Assembly (NCBI RefSeq): GCF_031769215.1
Contig: NW_026782534.1
Coordinates: 310,001-374,000, forward strand
Origin: Ylistrum balloti
Lineage: Eukaryota
Direction of reading: 5' to 3'
DNA: 64,000 bases
Shown here: positions 131 through 43,500 of the stretch, piece by piece
How the letters are laid out: each line of letters opens with the position of its first letter
Position numbering within the stretch: the stretch's first letter is position 1
Notes under the pieces: model-generated
What the model was told of the DNA's origin: nothing
Seen by the model: the letters and a program-made list of their open reading frames with translations, nothing else
Database searches by the model: none
Program-made: the position numbers and the translations under genes

Positions 131-1780
131 CTATACTTTGTTCTTGTATACAGGAGCATTAGATCGAGGCAGTGGTTTGTTTCCCAGGATAATGTCAGCG
201 GCCTTCTCAGCCAGCATTATTGTCGGGCCGTTCAGGTTCCCAGTAACTATATTTGGCATGATAGAGGCATCAACTACTCGAAGATTATCTACACCTAAAA
301 CACGAGTCTGAGAATCCAACACAGCCATCGGGTCACTCTCATCTCCCATTTTACATGTACATGATGGATGATAGGCACTGTCTGCGTAAGCACGGTTAAA
401 GGCATCAATCTCGGCATCTGTTTGACAATCAGGTCCTGGCAACAGCTCTCGACCAGCGCGGAAAGGATCAAACGCTTTCTGTTTAAACACTTTCCTGGCA
501 ACTTTGACACTGTCCCTCATTGTCCTCACATCATATTCTGTAGACAGATAGTTGGCTACAATCTTCGGATGGTCTCTTGGATTTTTGGTTTTCAGCTTGA
601 TGTTACCTTTACTGGTAGCATGCATTGGTCCTGTATGCAATTGGTAGGCATGTTCATCACCAGTTTTACGCCCGTGATCTTTCACAACAGAAGGTAAGAA
701 GTGAAACTGAATGTCGGGGTACTCAAGACCTTCTTCACTATGGACAAACCCACCACTCTCCAAATGTGCGCTGGCTCCATCTCCTTTCTGAGTCAGAAAC
801 CACTGTAGACCTATCCGAATCATATTGTGAGGGAATTTCCACTGAGCAGAATAAAGAGTGATTGGAAGCTTGCATGCCTCCTGTACATACACCTCAAGAT
901 GGTCTTGGAGATTTTCTCCGACACCAGGAAGGTGTTGAACCACAGGAATGTCCAGTGCCTTCAGATCGTCTGCATTACCCACACCCGATAACATGAGAAG
1001 CTGAGGAGAGTTGATTGATCCTCCACTCAAAATCACCTCCTTCTCTGCTCTGATCACCTTTTTTACACCCTTCTGTTCATACTCTACACCCACGGCTCGC
1101 TTGTTCTCAAACATAATCCTCGTGGACAGGGCATTTGATTCCACTGTCACATTGTCACGCTTCATAGCTGGCCTGAGGGAGGCCATAGCAGCACTCCATC
1201 GCCGGCCTTTGTGAATGGTCATGTCCATCAAACCTACACCCTCCTGTTGATAGCCATTCATGTCGTCTGTAAACAGAAAGCCAGCCTGCTGACCTGCTTC
1301 TATAAAGGCCTGATGCAGTGGGTTGTTGGTTTTTCCTCGTGACACATGAAGAGGACCATCACCTCCCCTGTAGTCATTCTCCCCAAGTTCATGGGTCTGA
1401 GATTTTTTAAAGTATGGTAAGCAATCTGCATATGACCATCCCTTTGCCCCAGCCTTCTCCCATCCATCATAATCACCAGCATTTCCACGGATATAGACCA
1501 TGGCATTGAGTGAAGACGATCCTCCCCAGACTCGTCCTCGTGGCCAGTACATGACCCTGTTGTTCATGTGAGGCTCTGGTTCCGTATGGTAGTACCAGTT
1601 GTACTTGTCATCACACAGGTTGTACATGAGGGCAGCAGGCATGTGGATCTTCCAGGTGTAGTCTCTTGGACCAGCCTCCAGAACACACACCTTGTTGTTA
1701 GGATCTGCAGACAATCGATTGGTGAGAGTACAGCCAGCTGATCCTGCACCAATGATGACGTAATCGTAGGTGGATCCAGC
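131..1780 (-). CDS. CHDH: Choline dehydrogenase (GMC oxidoreductase) domain, within the terminal exon of the fusion gene
   Basis: FAD-binding GxGxxG ([12 protein letters not shown]), GMC signature GGSSSLNAM, catalytic His (AYHPSCT) and Asn (GNLNGPT). As recalled, the sequence closely resembles vertebrate CHDH and bacterial BetA. Stop codon at 131-133. Confidence 0.95.
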   Translation of the reverse strand, partial: AGSTYDYVIIGAGSAGCTLTNRLSADPNNKVCVLEAGPRDYTWKIHMPAALMYNLCDDKYNWYYHTEPEPHMNNRVMYWPRGRVWGGSSSLNAMVYIRGNAGDYDGWEKAGAKGWSYADCLPYFKKSQTHELGENDYRGGDGPLHVSRGKTNNPLHQAFIEAGQQAGFLFTDDMNGYQQEGVGLMDMTIHKGRRWSAAMASLRPAMKRDNVTVESNALSTRIMFENKRAVGVEYEQKGVKKVIRAEKEVILSGGSINSPQLLMLSGVGNADDLKALDIPVVQHLPGVGENLQDHLEVYVQEACKLPITLYSAQWKFPHNMIRIGLQWFLTQKGDGASAHLESGGFVHSEEGLEYPDIQFHFLPSVVKDHGRKTGDEHAYQLHTGPMHATSKGNIKLKTKNPRDHPKIVANYLSTEYDVRTMRDSVKVARKVFKQKAFDPFRAGRELLPGPDCQTDAEIDAFNRAYADSAYHPSCTCKMGDESDPMAVLDSQTRVLGVDNLRVVDASIMPNIVTGNLNGPTIMLAEKAADIILGNKPLPRSNAPVYKNKV

Positions 1781-4700
1781 CCCAGATGTCGTGGAAGCAT
1801 TCCTCACCTGTACAGCACTGGTGGAACAGGGTGATTGTCTCCCTCGTGACATTGTGCTGAACAAACGACATTGGACATTGACACTTCCCGGCTTTCTCAG
1901 TTTAGGAAGAGCATTTGGTATCATTTGTTTGCCAGGAGTGGTTGGTGGGTCTTCTAAGATATGATCAATCACATGGTCTACAGTAGGCACCACTAGGTCG
2001 GTGACCCACTTTAGGTCATCTGCAGACCCTACACCTGATAGTACACCAATCTTTTGTATCTTAGCTGATCTTTCAAATGAAAAATCTTTGGTAGAATCGC
2101 CGACTATTACAGTTTTCTCAGGATTTACATTCAGTTCATCACATATGATTTGTGTGCTGTGATCAGGAGACCGTGAGACAGAGTGTGGATCATCTCCACA
2201 GATCATCATATCAACATATTTCAACACACCCAGATTTGTCAAATCTGACAGTGCAAGTTCACGCTTATCTCCAGTACATATTGCTATTTTGATTCCTTTT
2301 CTCTTTAGTGTTTTGAAGAATTTTTTGATGTCCTTGTGAAGTGATTTTGGTTCTTGAAGAAGCGTAGATTCACACTCCTGCCAGACTTTGTTTACAACCA
2401 TCAGAGACTCCTCATACGTCAAATGTTTATGGATCATCTCCACCAGTGACGACCTCACCTCCATGTTAGTGGTTCCATGTTCATTCAACAGCCCATCCTT
2501 TATTTTACTTGTTTGTTCACATATTCCAAGCCTCTGGTGAATTTCTGATCGCAGACCACAAAGACCAGTCGCCTGTTCTAACCTGTAACAAAAATTGAGA
2601 AAATCAATGCACTAACTGACCTCAATTACGATAAGAGAAATCCTGTAGAAATATTTTGATTCATTATATATAACACACTGAGATTGTAGAAATCCTGTTT
2701 ACAATATCCTGCACCCTTTATGTTATACAATGAGATTAGAGAAATCCTGTTTACAAGATCCCACACTCTTTATATAATATACAAAGATTAGAGAAATTCT
2801 GTTTACAATATCTCCCATTCTTTATATAACACACTGAGATTAGAGAAATCCTGTTTACAATATCTCCCATTCTTTATATAACACACTGAGATTGTAGAAA
2901 TCCTGTTTACAATATCTCCCATTCTTTATATAACACACTGAGATTAGAGAAATCCTCTTTATATAACACACAATATCTCCCATTCTTTATATAACACACT
3001 GAGATTAGAGAAATCCTTTATATCTCCCATTCTTTATATAACACACTGAGATTAGAGAAATCCTGTTTACAATATCTCCCATTCTTTATATAACACACTG
3101 AGATTAGAGAAATCCTGTTTACAATATCTCCCATTCTTTATATAACACACTGAGATTAGAGAAATCCTGTTTACAATATCTCCCATTCTTTATATAACAC
3201 ACTGAGATTAGAGAAATCCTGTTTACAATATCTCCCATTCTTTATATAACACACTGAGATTAGAGAAATCCTGTTTACAATATCTCCCATTCTTTATATA
3301 ACACACTGAGATTAGAGAAATCCTGTTTACAATATCTCCCATTCTTTATATAACACACTGAGATTGTAGAAATCCTGTTTACAATATCTCCCATTCTTTA
3401 TATAACACACTGAGATTAGAGAAATCCTGTTTACAATATCTCCCATTCTTTATATAACACACTGAGATTGTAGAAATCCTGTTTACAATATCTCCCATTC
3501 TTTATATAACACACTGAGATTAGAGAAATCCTGTTTACAATATCTCCCATTCTATTATATAACACACTATATAACATTGTAGAAATCCTGTTTACAATAT
3601 CTCCCATTCTTTATATAACACTTTATATAACACACTGAGATTAGAGAAATCCTGTTTACAATATCTCCCATTCTTTATATAACACACTGAGATTAGAGAA
3701 ATCCTGTTTACAATATCTCCCATTCTTTATATAACACACTGAGATTAGAGAAATCCTGTTTACAATATCTCCCATTCTTTATATAACACACTGAGATTGT
3801 AGAAATCCTGTTTACAATATCTCCCATTCTTTATATAACACACTGAGATTGTAGAAATCCTGTTTACAATATCTCCCATTCTTTATATAACACACTGAGA
3901 TTAGAGAAATCCTGTTTACAATATCTCCCATTCTTTATATAACACACTGAGATTGTAGAAATAATTCTTTATATAACACACTGAGATTGTAGAAATCCTG
4001 TTTACAATATCTCCCATTCTTTATATAACACACTGAGATTAGAGAAATCCTGTTTACAATATCTCCCATTCTTTATATAACACACTGAGATTAGAGAAAT
4101 CCTGTTTACAATGTCTCCCATTCTTTATATAACACACTGAGATTAGAGAAATCCTGTTTACAATATCTCCCATTCTTTATATAACACACTGAGATTAGAG
4201 AAATCCTGTTTACAATATCTCCCATTCTTTATATAACACATTCTTTATATAACACATATAACACACTGAGATTAGAGAAATCCTGTTTACAATATCTCCC
4301 ATTCTTTATATAACACACTGAGATTAGAGAAATCCTGTTTACAATATCTCCCATTCTTTATATAACACACTGAGATTGAGTAGAAATCCTGTTTACAATA
4401 TCTCCCATTCTTTATATAACACACTGAGATTAGAGAAATCCTGTTTACAATATCTCCATTCTTTATATTCTTTATATATAACACACTGAGATTAGAGAAA
4501 TCCTGTTTTTCCCATTCTTTATATAACACAATATCTATTCTTTATTCTTTATATACACACTGAGATTAGAGAAATCCTGTTTATCCTGTTTACAAGATCC
4601 CACACAATATCCTACCATTCTTTATATAATACAATGAGATTAGAGAAATCCTGTTTACAATATCTCCCACATTCTTTATATTATACAATGAGATTAGAGA

Positions 4701-7700
4701 AATCCTGTCTCCCATTCTTTATATAATACACAATATCCCACACTCTTTATATATACAATGAGATTAGAGAGAAATCCTGTTTACAATATCTCCACACTCT
4801 TTATGTTATACAATGAGATTAGAGAAATCCTGTTTACAATATCTCCCATTCTTTATATAATACAATGAGATTAGAGAAATCCTGTTTACAATATCCCACA
4901 CTCTGTATGTTATACAGTGAGATTAGAGAAATCCTGTTTACAATATCCCACACTCTTTATGTTATACAATGAGATTAGAGAAATCCTGTTTACAATATCT
5001 CCCATTCTTTATATAATACAATGAGATTAGAGAAATCCTGTTTACAATATCCCACACTCTTTATGTTATACAATGAGATTAGAGAAATCCTGTTTACAAT
5101 ATCTCCCATTCTTTATATAATACAATGAGATTAGAGAAATCCTGTTTACAATATCCCACACTCTTTATGTTATACAATGAGATTAGAGAAATCCTGTTTA
5201 CAATATCCCACACTCTTTATGTTATACAATGAGATTAGAGAAATCCTGTTTACAATATCCCACACTCTTTATGTTATACAGTGAGATTAGAGAAATCCTG
5301 TTTACAATATCCCACACTCTGTATGTTATACAATGAGATTAGAGAAATCCTGTTTACAATATCCCACACTCTACAGTGAGATTAGAGAAATTCTTTATAT
5401 AATACAATGAGATTAGAGAAATCCTTTATCCCACACTCTGTATGTTATACAATGAGATTAGAGAAATCCTGTTTACAATATCCCACACTCTGTATGTTAT
5501 ACAGTGAGATTAGAGAAATCCTGTTTACAATATCTCCCATTCTTTATATAATACAATGAGATTAGAGAAATCCTGTTTACAATATCCCACACTCTTTATG
5601 TTATACAATGAGATTAGAGAAATCCTGTTTACAATATCCCACACTCTGTATGTTATACAATGAGATTAGAGAAATCCTGTTTACAATATCCCACGCTCTT
5701 TATGTTATACAATGAGATTAGAGAAATCCTGTATACATCAACCCACATTCTTTATGTAATAATCAGAGGTAGACCAAAACTGGACACACTTTTGTGAGTA
5801 ACTGAAGATGTATTGTATGAATCAGTTGAGGTCTATAACTGTGGCAAAAACCAGGCTTGTATAAAATGTATGAATTTCAATGTCTTTCTTATTGTTTTCA
5901 TGTCCTGATGTGTGGATATCAATTTTCACACTTTTTGAAATTTTCAATTGTCACCAATTTACTTTCCTTGTATTGAAAGAATAGGAAAACAGGGTACACA
6001 CCTCGAGCAGATTTGGTCTGTCCATTTGCTGTACTTGCTGTGGGCACAGAGGATGGTACCATGGAGATCTAAGATGATCAAGGCAACAGTCGGTACATGA
6101 TTCTCAACACTAGCATACTCATCAGAATTGGAAGATTCCAAGGAATATGGTTCGATCAAGATTCTTTTGTCGTTGGAGTAAGCGTAGCATTCCCTCCATT
6201 GGTCCTCCGGTAGGATGAGGGGCAACAAGTCTTGGACACTTTCTATCACATGACTGGCCGCTGGGTACAAATCATTTGTCTGACCTACACCACTTAATAC
6301 CCCTATATTCCAGCCAAGCTGTGCTGCCTTTCCCATTCCCACATCAGCTTTGGTGTCTCCCACCATGACAGTATCTTCAGGGTTCACACCAAGCTTTTCA
6401 CAGATCATTTGAGCGTTATCTGCAGCAGGTTTTGGGACATTGTTGGGGTCATCACCACACACAATGTGATCAACTAAACCATGGATTCCTAAATCTTCTA
6501 AAAAGTTCTCAGTTCCTTTCCTGCAGTCAGCAGTGCAAACAGCGATCTTTACATTATTGCTTTTTAATATCTTAAACAAAGTGTTAAGGTCGGCTAAAGT
6601 TTTAGTTTCATAAATGCCGTGTCCATCTTCCCAGATGTTGTTCACAATGGCACGACCTTTGACCTCATCCACACCCTCCTGACTGAGAAGCTCCACTATA
6701 GCATCCTGGACCATTTCTGTGGTAGCTTCTGCAAGCAAACCTGGGATTACTCTGTCAGATGTGGTACAAAATCCAATTGTTTCAAATACTTTCTCCTGAA
6801 TGTCTAGTCCGGTGGCTTCTTCCAATCTGAAATAATAAAATTTTTAAAGTTAAATTATTTAAATCCAAATTATGGATCATTTACAATTATCAAGTAAGTA
6901 AATAAGAATTTAACATCAATGGTTAGACACCTACACTATACAAATAGATATACCAATGATTGGGCATAAGTAATTATCAGCTTATGGACATGCATGATAT
7001 GGATGATAAATTATCTACCCAAGATACCTCTAGCTTATAGTTATACAGGTTGGTATTTTCTAAATATACATGGTGAACACTTTATTCTGTATAATAAAAC
7101 ATGCATAAGCATCAAGCCTTTATATAGCTATATATGTATATAAGGAGTACAAAGCGCCATTCACAGGAATTTACACAAATGAGTATACATTGTGTTACAC
7201 TAATGAGTATACATTGTGTTACACTAATGAGTATACGTTGTGTTACACTAATGAGTATACATTGTGTTACACTAATGAGTATACCTTGTGTTACACTAAT
7301 GAGTATACATTGTGTTACACTAATTAGTATATGTTGTGCTACACTAATGAGTACATGTTGTGTTACACTAATGAGTATATGTTGTGTTACACTCATGAGT
7401 ATACATTGTTACACTAATGAGTATACATTGTTACACTAATGAGTATACATTGTGTTACACTAATGAGTATACGTTGTGTTACATTAATGAGTATACGTTG
7501 TGTTACACTAATGAGTATACATTGTGTTACACTAATGAGTATATGTTGTGAACAGGAAACTGAAATATGAACCGGTAATCATAATGTGGATCGCTGACCT
7601 CTGGGATATACATAAGGAAGTAGCACCTTGACCTACTCCTAAATTTTCATTCTTCTTTCCTCATCAATACGTGTTGGATTGCTATGACTTTTTATGAGTT

Positions 7701-9587
7701 TAATACTTGCTTGCCAAAATGTTTATTCATGCATGAAAACAATCAATACTATATGAAGCAACAAATTAGAAAAATGAAAAATGAAAATAAATACAGTAAA
7801 TTTTAATTTTTCCCAATAAATTGTATGTAAGAACACCATTATGCTAGTCTATCTTAATATACTGCTGAGCTTAAAAATAAGTAAGAAAACAGAATATATT
7901 ACACACTATCAAACATGCTAGTCTGATAAAAACCATGAATAAAAAATAAATCTTATAGTTAGAAAAAACAACAAAAATTAGATGTATCTATCCATACACA
8001 ACAGCCAACACTGAAGTTGATTAGTACATTTCTATGTGTATTTACTTAGAGGCTATTTTCCTGGCCCAAGGGGACCACATTGATTGGAAGCATATCAAGG
8101 TGCCGTCTTTGTCGAAAATAACTAGGGATGCCTTCTTCCCGGCATCAGTGGACTTGGTAGGTTTGACACTGTTGATAGTTCTGACTTCTGACAGGATGGT
8201 GTTATGATCTGTTACGGAGCTGTAGGTGGCGTAACTGCCACGAACGCCTGTAAGATAGACACAGCATGACAGACGGGGAAAGTGTGGCTCGTAGGGAGAC
8301 ACACAACATGTTGACAACAACTGTCCACACTACAAAAAACAATTCTGTTACAATAAATATGATAATACGTCCCACCAAATGAATGGCTTTGGTATCAGCC
8401 AGTAACACATAATGTCTGCCTATTTGCAGTGCTACTAGAATTTCAATTTAGAATCAGAATTCCAATTTATTGGATTAACAGTGAGAGGTATAAAACACAG
8501 TTTTAAAATGAGTTTTTTTAGATATTCATGAGATTTAAAATAAATTTGCCACAAAATATTCCAGGTATGTTTAATAGGAATATTGTGGTTTCTAAAATGT
8601 AGGTGTAATGAACCGTGATGACAACTACCTGAAAACTTAAAAAAGACAAAAATATTTTGATAATCAGGCAACTTAAGAATAAGGGACCATACTGCATCTA
8701 ACATTTTGTGTTAGAGAGGTTATCATAATTGAAGTGAACTATATTTTGTAGCATTATTTGAAAAAGAAGCCTTCCAATTTAAAAAAAAAAAACAGTGAAA
8801 TACTGGCATATTTTGTCATACTCTTGAAATATCAATACTCTTTAATAGAAAACTGTCACATAGTTATCGATTTCATTATCATCCACCTATATTGTTAAAT
8901 AATCATTTATCTATATTTGCCCGCCACCATCCCAATACAACAGTACTAGACTGTCAATGTATCAGTAATTATGTGGCTATAAAACTGGGATTGATTCCAC
9001 GGTATTAAGACACTGCTCTTCCCAATACTAGATCAGTTTTCTCTCAGTATAATACAAATTCAACTTACAGAAGTGTAGATTGCCTAAAAACATTGTTCAT
9101 AAATATAAAATAATTCAATATTTTCTATAGGTGATTTTGGTTGATATTATTCGAAGATACCCCTCTGTTAAATCTTCTCAGAAACTGGCCCTTATCAGAT
9201 TTCATAGGATCTCCTATGAAGTAATGAGCTAATGACTGTCGTCTCATGTTTCTGTCAAAAGTTGACATTTAAATCTTTCAAGGAGCAAACATTTATAGGT
9301 AACAGCATAAAGCAATAAATAAAATATTTATAAACCATTAAATATATCAATTATATAACCACACAAGCAATATCATTTATATAACATTATAAACAATTGG
9401 ATATAATAGGTATAAAATCGTAAACAAATAAATATTATATGAGAACTGTACAGACCAACACACCTAGCATAGTTTGCAGTTTGGGGTGGTATGCCGATAT
9501 ATTCTTTGAAGCATTCGATGCAGTGAAGATTCTGCTGAGACAACCGGGACGAAGCAGTCCTATACAGGTCTTCCTAACAGTTGCCAT
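131..9587 (-). CDS. CHDH: Mitochondrial tandem-HAD phosphatase / choline dehydrogenase fusion protein, 1200 aa, 4 coding exons (9587-9464, 8247-8046, 6826-6002, 2582-131)
   Basis: Exons joined by hand at GT-AG sites with phases 1, 2, 2 give 3603 nt, or 1201 codons including the stop. N-terminus [24 protein letters not shown] is Arg/Ser-rich and lacks acidic residues, like a presequence. HAD1 has [17 protein letters not shown] and VGDTKAD. HAD2 has [17 protein letters not shown] and VGDSTKD. The C-terminal part has [43 protein letters not shown] and [13 protein letters not shown], typical of CHDH/BetA. The symbol applies to the C-terminal domain only. Confidence 0.88.
1940..6090 (-). CDS. HAD-superfamily domain 2 (degenerate paralogue of domain 1), split by intron 6001-2583
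   Basis: Motif I is DLHGT (6069-6055) instead of DxDGT, motif III is SRSPD instead of KP, and GDSTKD is retained. It aligns by eye with HAD1 (LEEATG/LEQATG, IAVCTAD/IAICTGD, GVLSGVG in both). Confidence 0.85.
2620..5760. repeat. 52-bp minisatellite of about 60 copies in two sub-arrays, filling the last intron of the HAD-CHDH gene
   Basis: Unit GAGATTAGAGAAATCCTGTTTACAATATCTCCCATTCTTTATATAACACACT at about 2800-4560. Variant ...ATATCCCACACTCTTTATGTTATACAAT at about 4600-5740. The 52-bp period was checked at 3061/3113. Confidence 0.97.
6230..8140 (-). CDS. HAD-superfamily hydrolase domain 1 (phosphoglycolate-phosphatase-like, catalytic motifs intact), split by intron 8045-6827
   Basis: Motif I DKDGT at 8113-8099, motif II T (VCTAD), motif III K (PKPAAD, about 6432-6418) and motif IV GDxxxD (VGDTKAD). 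Confidence 0.88.
7180..7550. repeat. 24-bp minisatellite, about 15 copies (intron)
   Basis: Unit TAATGAGTATACATTGTGTTACAC, period 24 (7201/7225). It generates the spurious ORFs 7112-7396 and 7134-7439. Confidence 0.95.
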
Positions 9588-20494: not shown

Positions 20495-26805
<6,311 letters not shown>

Positions 26806-40500: not shown

Positions 40501-43500
40501 GGTTGTACACTTAAACCTGAACATTGACAGAGAGGTTTAACAAGGAAGGTGTGGTTGTACAGTTAAACCTGAACATTGACAGACAGAGAGGTTTAACAAG
40601 GGAGGTGTGGTTGTACAGTTAAACCTGAACATTGACAGACAGAGAGGTTTAACAAGGGAGGCATGGTTGTACATGATAAATCTTAATACTGACAGCCATA
40701 CAGAAAGGTTTAACAAGGGAGGCTTGGTTATACAATCAAACCTGAAAGTTGACAGACAGAAGGGTTTAACAAGGGAGGCATGGTTGTACAGATAAACCTT
40801 AATACTGAGACCCATACAGAAAGGTTTAACAAGGGAGGCATTGTTGTACATGATAAATCTTAATACTGACAGCCTTACAGAATTATTCAATAAGGGAGGC
40901 GTGGTTGTACAAATAAACCTTTATATTGATAGTCATAATAGATTATTTGGACTAATTTTGTTTTAGAATGTAATTCCAATTGATTAACCAGATTTAGAGT
41001 AAGAATTTGATAAGTTCTACTTTGAAATGCTGAAACATTGATGTTTATATATACATAAGTAATCCACATTCATTTATCAACTTGACTTCTTTCCATAGAA
41101 TTACAATAAAACACAAGATTTTAAAGAGTACAACATCTCTATAAACATATTAATTGCATAGAAATTAAATATATCCTCCTGATATAACTGATTCAAATCA
41201 GAACACATAGTAAGACTGCAACTCACCTTGTTAACCCTGGAACAGATAGCCATCAGGATAAGATGTAGATGCTTGACTGGGTTTAGGGCCTGACACAACG
41301 TAATGTAGATATTCAACACTTTCTGTACCAAGTGTACCTCTGAACTCTGCAACAATCATGCTTAGATGTTAATAGATATTGAAATAGATATGAAAAAGCA
41401 TTATTGACTGTTATTTGACCAGTCAGATAAATAGCAGAGCTTCATTAATATGACAGCTGACCAGCCAGACAAGTTGCTGAAGAGTCGGATAAATTGCCCA
41501 CCTTCATTGTTACAATAGCTGACCAATCTGATAAATTGCCCACCTTCATTGTTACAATAGGTAATCAGTTAGATAAATTGCCCACCTTCATTGTTACAAT
41601 AGCTGATCAGTTAGATAAATTGCCCACCTTCATTGTTACAATAGCTGATCAGTTAGATAAATTGCCCACCTTCACTGTTACAATAGCTGATCAGTTAGAT
41701 AAATTACCTACCTTCATTGTTACAATAGCTGACCAGTCAAACAAATTACCTACCTTCATTGTTACAATAGCTGACCAGTCAGACAAATTACCTACCTTCA
41801 TTGTTACAATAGCTGATCAGTTAGATAAATTGCCCACCTTCATTGTTACAATAGCTGATCAGTTAGATAAATTGCCCACCTTCATTGTTACAATAGCTGA
41901 TCAATCAGATAAATTGCCAACCTTCATTGTTACAATAGCTGATCAGTTAGATAAATTGCCCACCTTCATTGTTACAATAGCTGATCAGTTAGATAAATTG
42001 CCCACCTTCATTGTTAATATAGCTGATCAGTTAGATAAATTGCATACCTTCATTGTTACAATAGCTGATCAGTTAGATAAATTGCCCACCTTCATTGTTA
42101 ATATAGCTGATCAGTTAGATAAATTGCCCACTTTCATTGTTACAATAGCTGATCAGTTAGATAAATTGCCCACCTTCATTGTTACAATAGCTGATCAGTT
42201 AGATAAATTGCCCACCTTCATTGTTACAATAGCTGATCAGTTAGATAAATTGCCCACCTTCATTGTTACAATAGCTGATCAGTTAGATAAATTGCCCACC
42301 TTCATTGTTACAATAGCTGATCAGTTAGATAAATTGCCCACCTTCATTGTTACAATAGCTGATCAGTTAGATAAATTGCCCACCTTCATTGTTACAATAG
42401 CTGATCAGTTAGATAAATTGCATACCTTCATTGTTACAATAGCTGATCAGTTAGATAAATTGCATACCTTCATTGTTACAATTGCTGACAGCTCTTTTAA
42501 GGACAAATTAACACATTTGAGACAGCTTTGTCTTTGTTCATTGTCTTCCATTCTCATGGTTAACTCCACTACCTTGGCACCAACCACACTGAGACTGAAA
42601 CCAAAAACAATAATCATACATGTACTTTATTTACTAAAACATACCATTTTAACCTTATCAAATTATATCATTCTACTGAAATTGAGGGTCTGTCATTTCT
42701 TTCTCTTCACAAGAATTTCAGACCTATGTAAAAAAACAATTTGTTACTCCTAAAAACTTCATTCCAAACAAAGTTTACTCCTCATTCCAACCCTAATAAC
42801 ACAGGTAACGACTGGTAACTCAAACCCATCCCATTCTTATCCACACAACAGACCTTGATTTGGCTAAATTACTGACCATACACCAACCTACCATTCTGTT
42901 AATGCTTTACAGATATGCGAGTCCTCCACAAATATACCAGTGTAGTGAGCCACCATAGGAAGTAGGAGGGAGGAACTTTCTACTGGCAGGTTTTGTAGGA
43001 AATGTCTACAGGTGTGATGGATCTCCGTGATGAATAGTTTCTCCACTTGTTTGGCACATTGTAGTTTATTGTCAGGTCTGACCAAGCAACAACTGCAATA
43101 AATGCAAACATTCCTTTGTCATATAAACTTTTCTATAAGATTGTAAAACTTCTCTCTGTTAATGCTGAGAATCATGTTATATCACATCGTCCCCAATTAA
43201 CCTCAGTCTACTTTATAATGTCTAAATTGATACAATTCCTCTGTACAAATATTCAACACTGTTACTATAGCTATCATTAATTAAAAACATTTCATTTTTG
43301 CCAAACAGCTAAAATAAGGATTCAGGTAAATTACAGTATTGTACATGAACATTACCCAACACAACTCTTATGATGAGAGGAGCTTTCATACAACAGCATT
43401 ACATTTCAAAGCATCTTACCTCAGATAGCCCTCTAACTGACGTGAAAAGCTTTAATACAATCAGTAGCACAATTTACAGTAGCTTACCTCAAATAGCCCT

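Follow-up and report, generated by a model that had tools for sequence, protein, structure and literature searches.

The window analysed here, the whole 64,000-nt stretch of Ylistrum balloti DNA shown above, carries on its minus strand a gene that encodes a 1200-aa protein in which two HAD-type phosphatase domains (HAD1 and HAD2) are fused to a choline dehydrogenase (CHDH). Base-by-base reading and assembly by script gave three GT-AG introns of 1216, 1219 and 3419 nt and a spliced coding sequence (CDS) of 3603 nt whose sole stop is the terminal one. This manual and scripted rebuild reproduced the coordinates, junctions and length of the continuous open reading frame (ORF) described in a first-pass annotation made from the letters of this DNA. 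Along the ORF come a presequence-like region, HAD1, HAD2, a disordered linker and a BetA-type CHDH; Pfam and NCBIfam searches, which returned two HAD regions followed by GMC_oxred_N and GMC_oxred_C, agree with the earlier description of a presequence-like region, two HADs and a full CHDH in one frame. When the model was compared with the window by tblastn, the four exons were the only matches besides cross-matches between HAD1 and HAD2, which are ~35% identical. It represents a conserved bilaterian gene that scallops carry in at least two paralogous tandem copies, and the fusion it encodes is genuine, old and uncharacterised, yet already present in sequence databases. Coordinates are collected in the table below.

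Table. Exons, motifs, repeats and neighbouring features in the window (positions are those of the 64,000-nt stretch).
Feature	Position	Strand	Content
Exon 1	9464..9587	minus	ATG at 9587-9585 in ACCATGG context; most of the N-terminal presequence-like region
Exon 2	8046..8247	minus	End of the presequence region and start of HAD1; motif I FDKDGT at 8116-8099
Exon 3	6002..6826	minus	Remaining HAD1, conserved inter-HAD segment, HAD2 motif I LDLHGT at 6072-6055
HAD1 motifs in exon 3	6537-6517; 6438-6418; 6363-6343	minus	Motif II CTAD; motif III PKP; motif IV GDTKAD
Exon 4	131..2582	minus	Rest of HAD2, linker and CHDH; stop at 133-131
Exon 4, HAD2 remainder	1934..2582	minus	Degenerate motif III VSRSPDH at 2179-2159; motif IV GDSTKD at 2104-2084
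Exon 4, linker	1772..1933	minus	Disordered, poorly conserved; MPP-type motif RLFST at 1867-1853
Exon 4, BetA-type FAD CHDH	131..1771	minus	GAGSAG within 1768-1733; catalytic His region 376-344; GNLNGPT 241-221
Possible cryptic 3' splice site	2034..2036	minus	ctatcAG/GT, inside exon 4
52-bp satellite array	2630..5761	unassigned	Occupies most of intron 3
24-bp minisatellite	7171-7550		In intron 2
N4BP1-like neighbour gene	20495-25635	minus	160-aa and 521-aa ORFs
Repetitive 419-aa ORF	41494-42753	plus	Most likely a 42-bp minisatellite

In the 546 aa of the C-terminal module, Pfam placed PF00732 (GMC_oxred_N, 4.9e-59) and PF05199 (GMC_oxred_C, 2.3e-36), and the NCBIfam models TIGR01810, the betA equivalog, and NF002550 scored 775.2 and 836.8 bits against cutoffs of 732.1 and 605. 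The BetA structure 9lq0 matched over its full length (E=1.2e-176), with the active-site stretches HPSC.CKMG and GNLN aligned; the FAD-binding GAGSAG lies at residues 662-667, and both the His stretch and GNLNGPT align with 9lq0. By all sequence tests applied, then, this module is a choline dehydrogenase. It resembles bacterial BetA and vertebrate mitochondrial CHDH end to end, FAD motif and active-site His/Asn stretches included, but those enzymes stand alone at ~560-600 aa, whereas in the scallop fusion the apparent former presequence now lies inside the protein, as a linker that follows two HADs. By analogy with CHDH and BetA, the module would oxidise choline to betaine aldehyde in mitochondria. 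Betaine aldehyde is the product of CHDH, and a betaine aldehyde dehydrogenase step is still expected for betaine. The earlier idea of a phosphocholine-to-betaine pathway in one polypeptide was therefore overstated, since CHDH halts at betaine aldehyde.

Both HAD units matched the Pfam models HAD_2 and Hydrolase. HAD1 has all four motifs complete (FDKDGT, CTAD, PKP, GDTKAD), and in a motif table of 25 full-length fusions it was canonical in every tabulated mollusc, reading FDKDGT, [CSI]T[SA]D, PKP and GDTxxD. Across 104 members of the HAD1 family the catalytic residues D, D, G, T, T, K, GD and D are invariant, and the family carries a signature of its own: FHxMWxPW right after motif I, GxLAExT in the cap and CTxDxR at motif II. 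Stand-alone relatives of ~300 aa and 40-47% identity, most of them with an N-terminal extension ahead of the HAD core, occur in nematodes (Steinernema, Brugia, Loa, Strongyloides, Anisakis), a tunicate, Saccoglossus, the copepod Eurytemora and flukes, and all are uncharacterised so far. An AlphaFold2 model of HAD1 reached a predicted local distance difference test (pLDDT) score of 96 and shows a Rossmann-like core with a helical C1 cap after motif I. By sequence, the nearest solved structures in the PDB are AlnB, NANP and PGP (E ~1e-5 to 1e-6). The best Foldseek matches in the PDB and Swiss-Prot are C1-cap HAD-IA enzymes (TMq 0.52-0.64, 17-22% identity), with phosphoglycolate phosphatases, NANP, beta-PGM and the MtlD phosphatase domain as fold neighbours, and the top neighbours over NCBIfam, the PDB and Swiss-Prot were PGP, PhnX-like proteins, NANP and beta-PGM. 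No substrate-specific neighbour appeared in the PDB sequence search, in Foldseek against the PDB and Swiss-Prot or in the ESM Atlas, which returned generic HAD-IA enzymes only. From its motifs and modelled fold, HAD1 would be an active Mg-dependent phosphomonoesterase of an orphan HAD-IA clade, and it is probably the only one of the mollusc HADs that looks catalytically competent.

The genomic context of distant HAD homologues on alphaproteobacterium-like and giant-virus-like contigs offered no clue to the substrate. One of these homologues, of 354 aa, lies directly before a glutamine synthetase gene on a 102-kb contig (L006, 8001-9065), and the pair recurs on a second contig (L007). L006 bears giant-virus hallmarks, namely a 12,373-aa ORF, a PARP_regulatory domain, XRN and RING proteins.

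HAD2 is altered at several of the same positions. Its motif I, LDLHGT, keeps the nucleophile Asp, but the general acid at Asp+2 has become His. This residue is replaced in all 23 tabulated molluscs, by His in 21 and by Asn in two (Mactra and Nucella). Scallops, this one included (VSRSPDH), oysters and the cephalopod have no motif III Lys, whereas several clams and snails retain it; the cephalopod also lacks motif IV, which reads GDSTKD in this scallop. The domain is folded in an orthologue model (pLDDT ~80-85). In the HAD of mammalian ACAD10 the first Asp of DxD is the only one left; its phosphatase activity is negligible, and the domain holds back the kinase next to it (PMC11342911). HAD2 resembles it at the level of motifs in keeping the first Asp only; ACAD10, however, has no second, intact HAD, and its flavoenzyme is an acyl-CoA dehydrogenase where that of the scallop is a GMC oxidoreductase. 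By this analogy HAD2 is most likely non-catalytic and would act as a ligand-binding, regulatory or scaffolding domain.

The exon structure bears on how the two HADs arose. The junctions 8046/6826 and 6002/2582 are both in phase 2 and fall at the equivalent point of each HAD unit (..IASK/LEEATG and ..ICSR/LEQATG, the slash marking the intron), which together with the ~35% identity indicates that the tandem came from duplication of a two-exon unit, intron included. In a tree of HAD domains, mollusc HAD1 and HAD2 form separate, well-supported clades (98/99 and 100/98), with longer branches for HAD2; the duplication is therefore older than the split of bivalves, gastropods and cephalopods. The same tree leaves undecided whether the annelid, flatworm and mollusc duplications were one event or several. 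In the annelid Owenia fusiformis (P0319) the roles are reversed, HAD1 being degenerate (DKNGT, motif III Lys replaced by Arg) and HAD2 intact (DKDGT), while HAD2 of the flatworm Macrostomum lignano (P0326) retains DKDGS and has no Lys in motif III. A pairing of one intact with one degenerate HAD may be the general rule.

Flukes carry the HAD family without CHDH. Clonorchis (P0030) has a tandem pair, and Paragonimus (P0208) one full HAD with a short second fragment; such forms reflect either loss of the CHDH module or split gene models.

The first-pass annotation had argued that the fusion is no gene-model artefact, pointing to the single stop-free exon that HAD2 and CHDH share, and orthologues and spliced contigs in other molluscs now back this up. 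Four Logan contigs of 4.0-4.7 kb, from three studies of other molluscs, contain an uninterrupted CDS of 1181-1202 aa with untranslated regions on both sides. A 6.5-Mb genomic contig of another bivalve has matching exons with introns at identical protein positions, and further contigs bear ORFs of exon 4 only (816-822 aa). Since the genomic exons are thus split by introns, the uninterrupted Logan contigs are spliced mRNAs of the fused gene. Identity per domain to scallop orthologues is 85-93%, and conservation reaches the cephalopods; between scallop and oyster, snail or octopus it is 70-73% for CHDH, 54-56% for HAD1 and 37-42% for HAD2. Two shorter forms were considered and rejected. The 816-822-aa "single-HAD plus GMC" proteins (P0017-P0019), taken for a shorter architecture, are just exon-4 ORFs from unspliced contigs. 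The Pecten and Mizuhopecten "isoform X2", taken for a CHDH-only form, begins at an internal Met of exon 3 (residue 147) and retains both HAD2 and CHDH.

A search for the architecture across Lophotrochozoa and other metazoans, which the first-pass annotation had suggested, mapped the fusion to over 40 predicted proteins. Besides molluscs, their sources are an annelid, a flatworm, a hemichordate, a copepod and an acoel. With the HAD2-linker region as query we recovered proteins of ~1190-1200 aa and the same domains from scallops (Ylistrum, 84%; Pecten; Mizuhopecten; Argopecten), oyster, gastropods and cephalopods. HAD1 alone, queried against long proteins, added many bivalves and gastropods, the freshwater genera Dreissena, Sinanodonta, Lymnaea, Biomphalaria and Bulinus among them. 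Outside molluscs, two-HAD fusions were found in Owenia (1160 aa) and Macrostomum (1145 aa), and single-HAD fusions in the hemichordate Glandiceps (907 aa) and the copepod Lepeophtheirus (863 aa), both from the HAD1 query on long proteins, and in the acoel Convolutriloba (1013 aa), from an exhaustive profile search. Automatic pipelines label these proteins "uncharacterized protein" or "choline dehydrogenase, mitochondrial-like". The first-pass annotation knew of no characterised enzyme with this architecture. We found no paper in the literature that characterises or describes HAD-HAD-CHDH, while the architecture itself already sits in databases under those automatic names.

Compared with two Ylistrum paralogues (P0001 and P0005), the scallop protein shows a mosaic of similarity, with HAD1 closer to copy b (84% vs 76%) and HAD2 closer to copy a (92% vs 85%). 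This pattern suggests gene conversion among the tandem scallop paralogues.

We next consider the two regions that lie outside the folded domains. By composition count, the first 45 aa contain seven K/R and no D/E, a bias shared by most complete orthologues, and the N-terminal region is disordered in an orthologue model (pLDDT ~25). The linker between HAD2 and GAGSAG spans ~55 residues, is disordered in the full-length orthologue model (pLDDT 25-33) and, at ~20% identity between mollusc classes, can barely be aligned. It contains all the same a recurrent motif, R-x-[F/Y/L]-[S/A/C]-[S/T], found in 29 of 32 sequences at 14-48 residues ahead of the FAD motif, and often twice. Among representatives of deep lineages 13 of 14 have it, against 0.44 expected when each linker is shuffled. 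In this scallop it reads RLFST (residues 623-627). The classical site of the mitochondrial processing peptidase (MPP) has Arg at -2 and an aromatic residue at +1, and a junction with both is present in the scallop linker and conserved among the fusion homologues. The most economical reading is that the linker would be the former CHDH presequence, retained as a cleavage site still in use.

Precedents for such a junction exist. In yeast, MPP splits Arg5,6 into two enzymes at an internal RSY (Arg -2, aromatic +1), with trimming by Icp55 predicted (PMC8734313); Atp25 is another internally cut mitochondrial precursor (PMC5063612); and ACAD10 is cut internally at MPP consensus sites, splitting off its flavoenzyme (PMC11342911). 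In all three, two enzyme units follow one presequence and are separated by a disordered, presequence-like junction, as in the scallop protein, whose junction motif is conserved in the fusion homologues (PMC8734313, PMC5063612, PMC11342911). The cleavage of these three is experimental, whereas that of the scallop protein is proposed by likeness, and the partner enzymes of Arg5,6 and Atp25 are unrelated to those of the scallop. On these grounds MPP would probably cut at R-x-F/Y-S-T after import, followed by Icp55 trimming, and cleavage would free a HAD1-HAD2 protein and mature CHDH in equal amounts. The earlier description of a single polypeptide thus stands for the ORF, which is continuous, but the mature products may be two proteins.

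A serious, if minority, possibility is that the protein stays whole and works as a bifunctional enzyme, HAD1 making choline beside the CHDH active site and the linker motif being a relic of the presequence. The ORF is continuous and the order of domains constant across phyla, and there is a bacterial precedent. In MtlD, the mannitol-1-phosphate dehydrogenase/phosphatase of Acinetobacter, a HAD-IA phosphatase is likewise joined to a compatible-solute dehydrogenase, and HAD1 resembles its phosphatase domain in fold (7ocs, E ~4e-10, TMq ~0.6; matches to NF046057 are weak). The likeness has limits, as identity is just ~17%, the dehydrogenase fold differs, and the MtlD phosphatase follows the dehydrogenase step where the scallop HAD1 would have to precede CHDH. 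A relic, moreover, would not be expected to hold R-x-F/Y-S-T in those 13 of 14 deep lineages while the linker around it drifts to ~20% identity; those composite precursors already known to have a junction motif of this kind undergo cleavage (PMC8734313, PMC11342911), and the full-length model shows no fixed arrangement of the domains (predicted template modelling score, pTM, 0.41). We therefore prefer the reading in which the precursor is split.

The first-pass annotation proposed that the HAD module may release choline from phosphocholine, and we found no support for this: HAD1 had no match to PF06888 (PHOSPHO1-type) at E<=0.01 in Pfam, its neighbours are generic HAD-IA enzymes, and the argument comes down to pathway logic. 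Phosphatases of the PHOSPHO1/PECP1 type and PchP share with HAD1 the HAD superfamily and DxD chemistry and would catalyse the proposed reaction, but they differ from HAD1, whose neighbours in sequence and fold are phosphoglycolate-phosphatase-like HAD-IA proteins. Freshwater snails and mussels carry the fusion too, which weakens the proposed link to marine osmoconformers. Aromatic and acidic residues specific to the HAD1 family could accommodate a cationic head group. Speculatively, the wide retention of the fusion makes it probable that HAD1 acts in the pathway of CHDH, and by pathway logic phosphocholine, yielding choline, would be the best single candidate for its substrate, a tentative choice that we expect to prove wrong more readily than right.

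The HAD module may instead supply no substrate at all, being a regulator or sensor, or an unrelated housekeeping phosphatase (for example of the phosphoglycolate repair type) that uses the import signal of CHDH. We regard this as doubtful. It draws on the closest named relatives, which are phosphoglycolate phosphatases, NANP and beta-PGM and include no choline enzymes, on the HAD of ACAD10, which is regulatory and not catalytic (PMC11342911), and on the family's stand-alone occurrence in nematodes, tunicates and others, with a tandem pair without CHDH in flukes. However, the strong constraint on all catalytic residues of HAD1 fits an enzyme better than a sensor, and CHDH as the constant fusion partner in six phyla is hard to explain without a functional link.

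A further alternative concerns transcripts: the fusion would be one isoform among several, and a CHDH-only product would arise in addition if exon 1 were spliced to the cryptic acceptor at 2036-2035 or if an internal promoter or start codon were used. The sequence ctatcAG/GT in exon 4 is in frame with exon 1 (9464 to 2034), so that the HADs would be skipped; a 642-aa Pecten maximus protein consists of a presequence, the last 20 aa of HAD2, the linker and CHDH; and an in-frame Met (MIPNAL) stands 19 aa ahead of RLFST in this scallop. But the Pecten protein comes from a separate, diverged locus (87% CHDH identity to the full-length copies) and is no isoform, and a conserved internal start codon was rejected because the MIPNAL Met is missing from other scallops and other molluscs. 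We think such a product quite improbable. That the long ORF is an artefact, either two adjacent genes read through or a decaying pseudogene, is close to refuted: contigs of this genome region in one public run lack spliced joints and one of them omits 173 nt of the CHDH exon (see below), but HAD2 and CHDH lie in one stop-free exon of an intact 1200-aa ORF with canonical splice sites, each domain is 85-93% identical to its scallop orthologues with conservation out to cephalopods, and full-length spliced contigs exist in other molluscs.

Altogether, we lean, slightly beyond an even chance, towards the joint reading of a composite mitochondrial precursor with an active HAD1, a non-catalytic HAD2 and a CHDH, probably split by MPP, in which HAD1 probably serves the CHDH pathway. 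The label of a single-polypeptide phosphocholine-to-betaine pathway goes beyond the evidence because HAD2 is probably no enzyme, HAD1 shows no tie to the phosphocholine phosphatases already known, the CHDH reaction ends with betaine aldehyde, and cleavage of the precursor is likely. Several points weigh against this joint reading as well. Mitochondrial targeting by the putative N-terminal presequence and the putative MPP cleavage are both argued from composition, motif and analogy. The degenerate copy in Owenia is HAD1, which makes HAD2 as the pseudo-domain apparently a rule of molluscs only. Many molluscs retain the motif III Lys and motif IV of HAD2, and the strictness with which His occupies Asp+2 could reflect altered rather than lost catalysis. 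By sequence and modelled fold HAD1 has no specific similarity to PHOSPHO1/PECP1 or PchP, and we know of no phosphocholine pool in the mitochondrial matrix. Some of the non-mollusc fusions are, as sequences, automatic gene models only.

The single public run found to contain this DNA (X1), compared over 131-3100, gave genomic-like contigs without spliced joints and so lends no transcript support to the junctions in this species. Two contigs, with loose ends at 2589 and 2599, depart 7-17 nt into intron 3, and their ends are not exon 3 sequence. The contig with the 173-nt omission, at 600-774, has ends of the form TG..TG, and the missing piece is not an intron. The run probably represents another haplotype, a paralogue or a related species.

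A bolder version of the joint reading, which we consider unlikely, would make the gene an ancient bilaterian polyprotein, cut by MPP at a junction more than 500 million years old into a CHDH and a phosphatase of phosphocholine or an amino-alcohol phosphate, with HAD2 as a sensor of the phospho-ligand. If this were true, the choline for betaine would be made by a phosphatase delivered together with CHDH, and the orphan stand-alone HAD family of nematodes (filarial parasites included), tunicates and hemichordates would gain a function.

Glycine betaine, a major osmolyte, also serves as a methyl donor. According to work cited in PMC11849188, oyster mitochondria make it from choline, and the step that limits its supply is not settled. 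A study of Crassostrea hongkongensis that cloned a choline dehydrogenase, ChCDH, gives no ORF length for it, so that this oyster enzyme may or may not be the fusion. The scallop gene stays of interest for the persistence of the HAD-CHDH pairing over six phyla and for the conserved junction motif. A HAD that has stayed with CHDH in lineages as distant as acoels and cephalopods is a strong "Rosetta stone" hint and suggests an unrecognised phosphatase step in the choline/betaine pathway of most invertebrates, and the conserved junction, if cleaved, would be an animal-wide addition to the short list of two-enzyme precursors split by MPP. Even if these readings fail, a gene that public pipelines label "uncharacterized" or "choline dehydrogenase-like" now has a correct annotation.

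The satellite array in intron 3 comprises ~60 copies with 79-98% match, and the minisatellite in intron 2, with 16 copies, accounts for spurious repetitive ORFs on both strands at 7112-7439. Elsewhere in the window, the N4BP1-like gene on the minus strand includes a 160-aa ORF that ends in UBA_N4BP1_C (1.9e-15); upstream of it lies a 521-aa ORF whose terminus resembles the start of an NYN-type RNase domain. The 419-aa ORF on the plus strand consists of ~28 tandem copies of the 14-aa unit PTFIVTIADQLDKL and is most likely a 42-bp minisatellite, not a gene.

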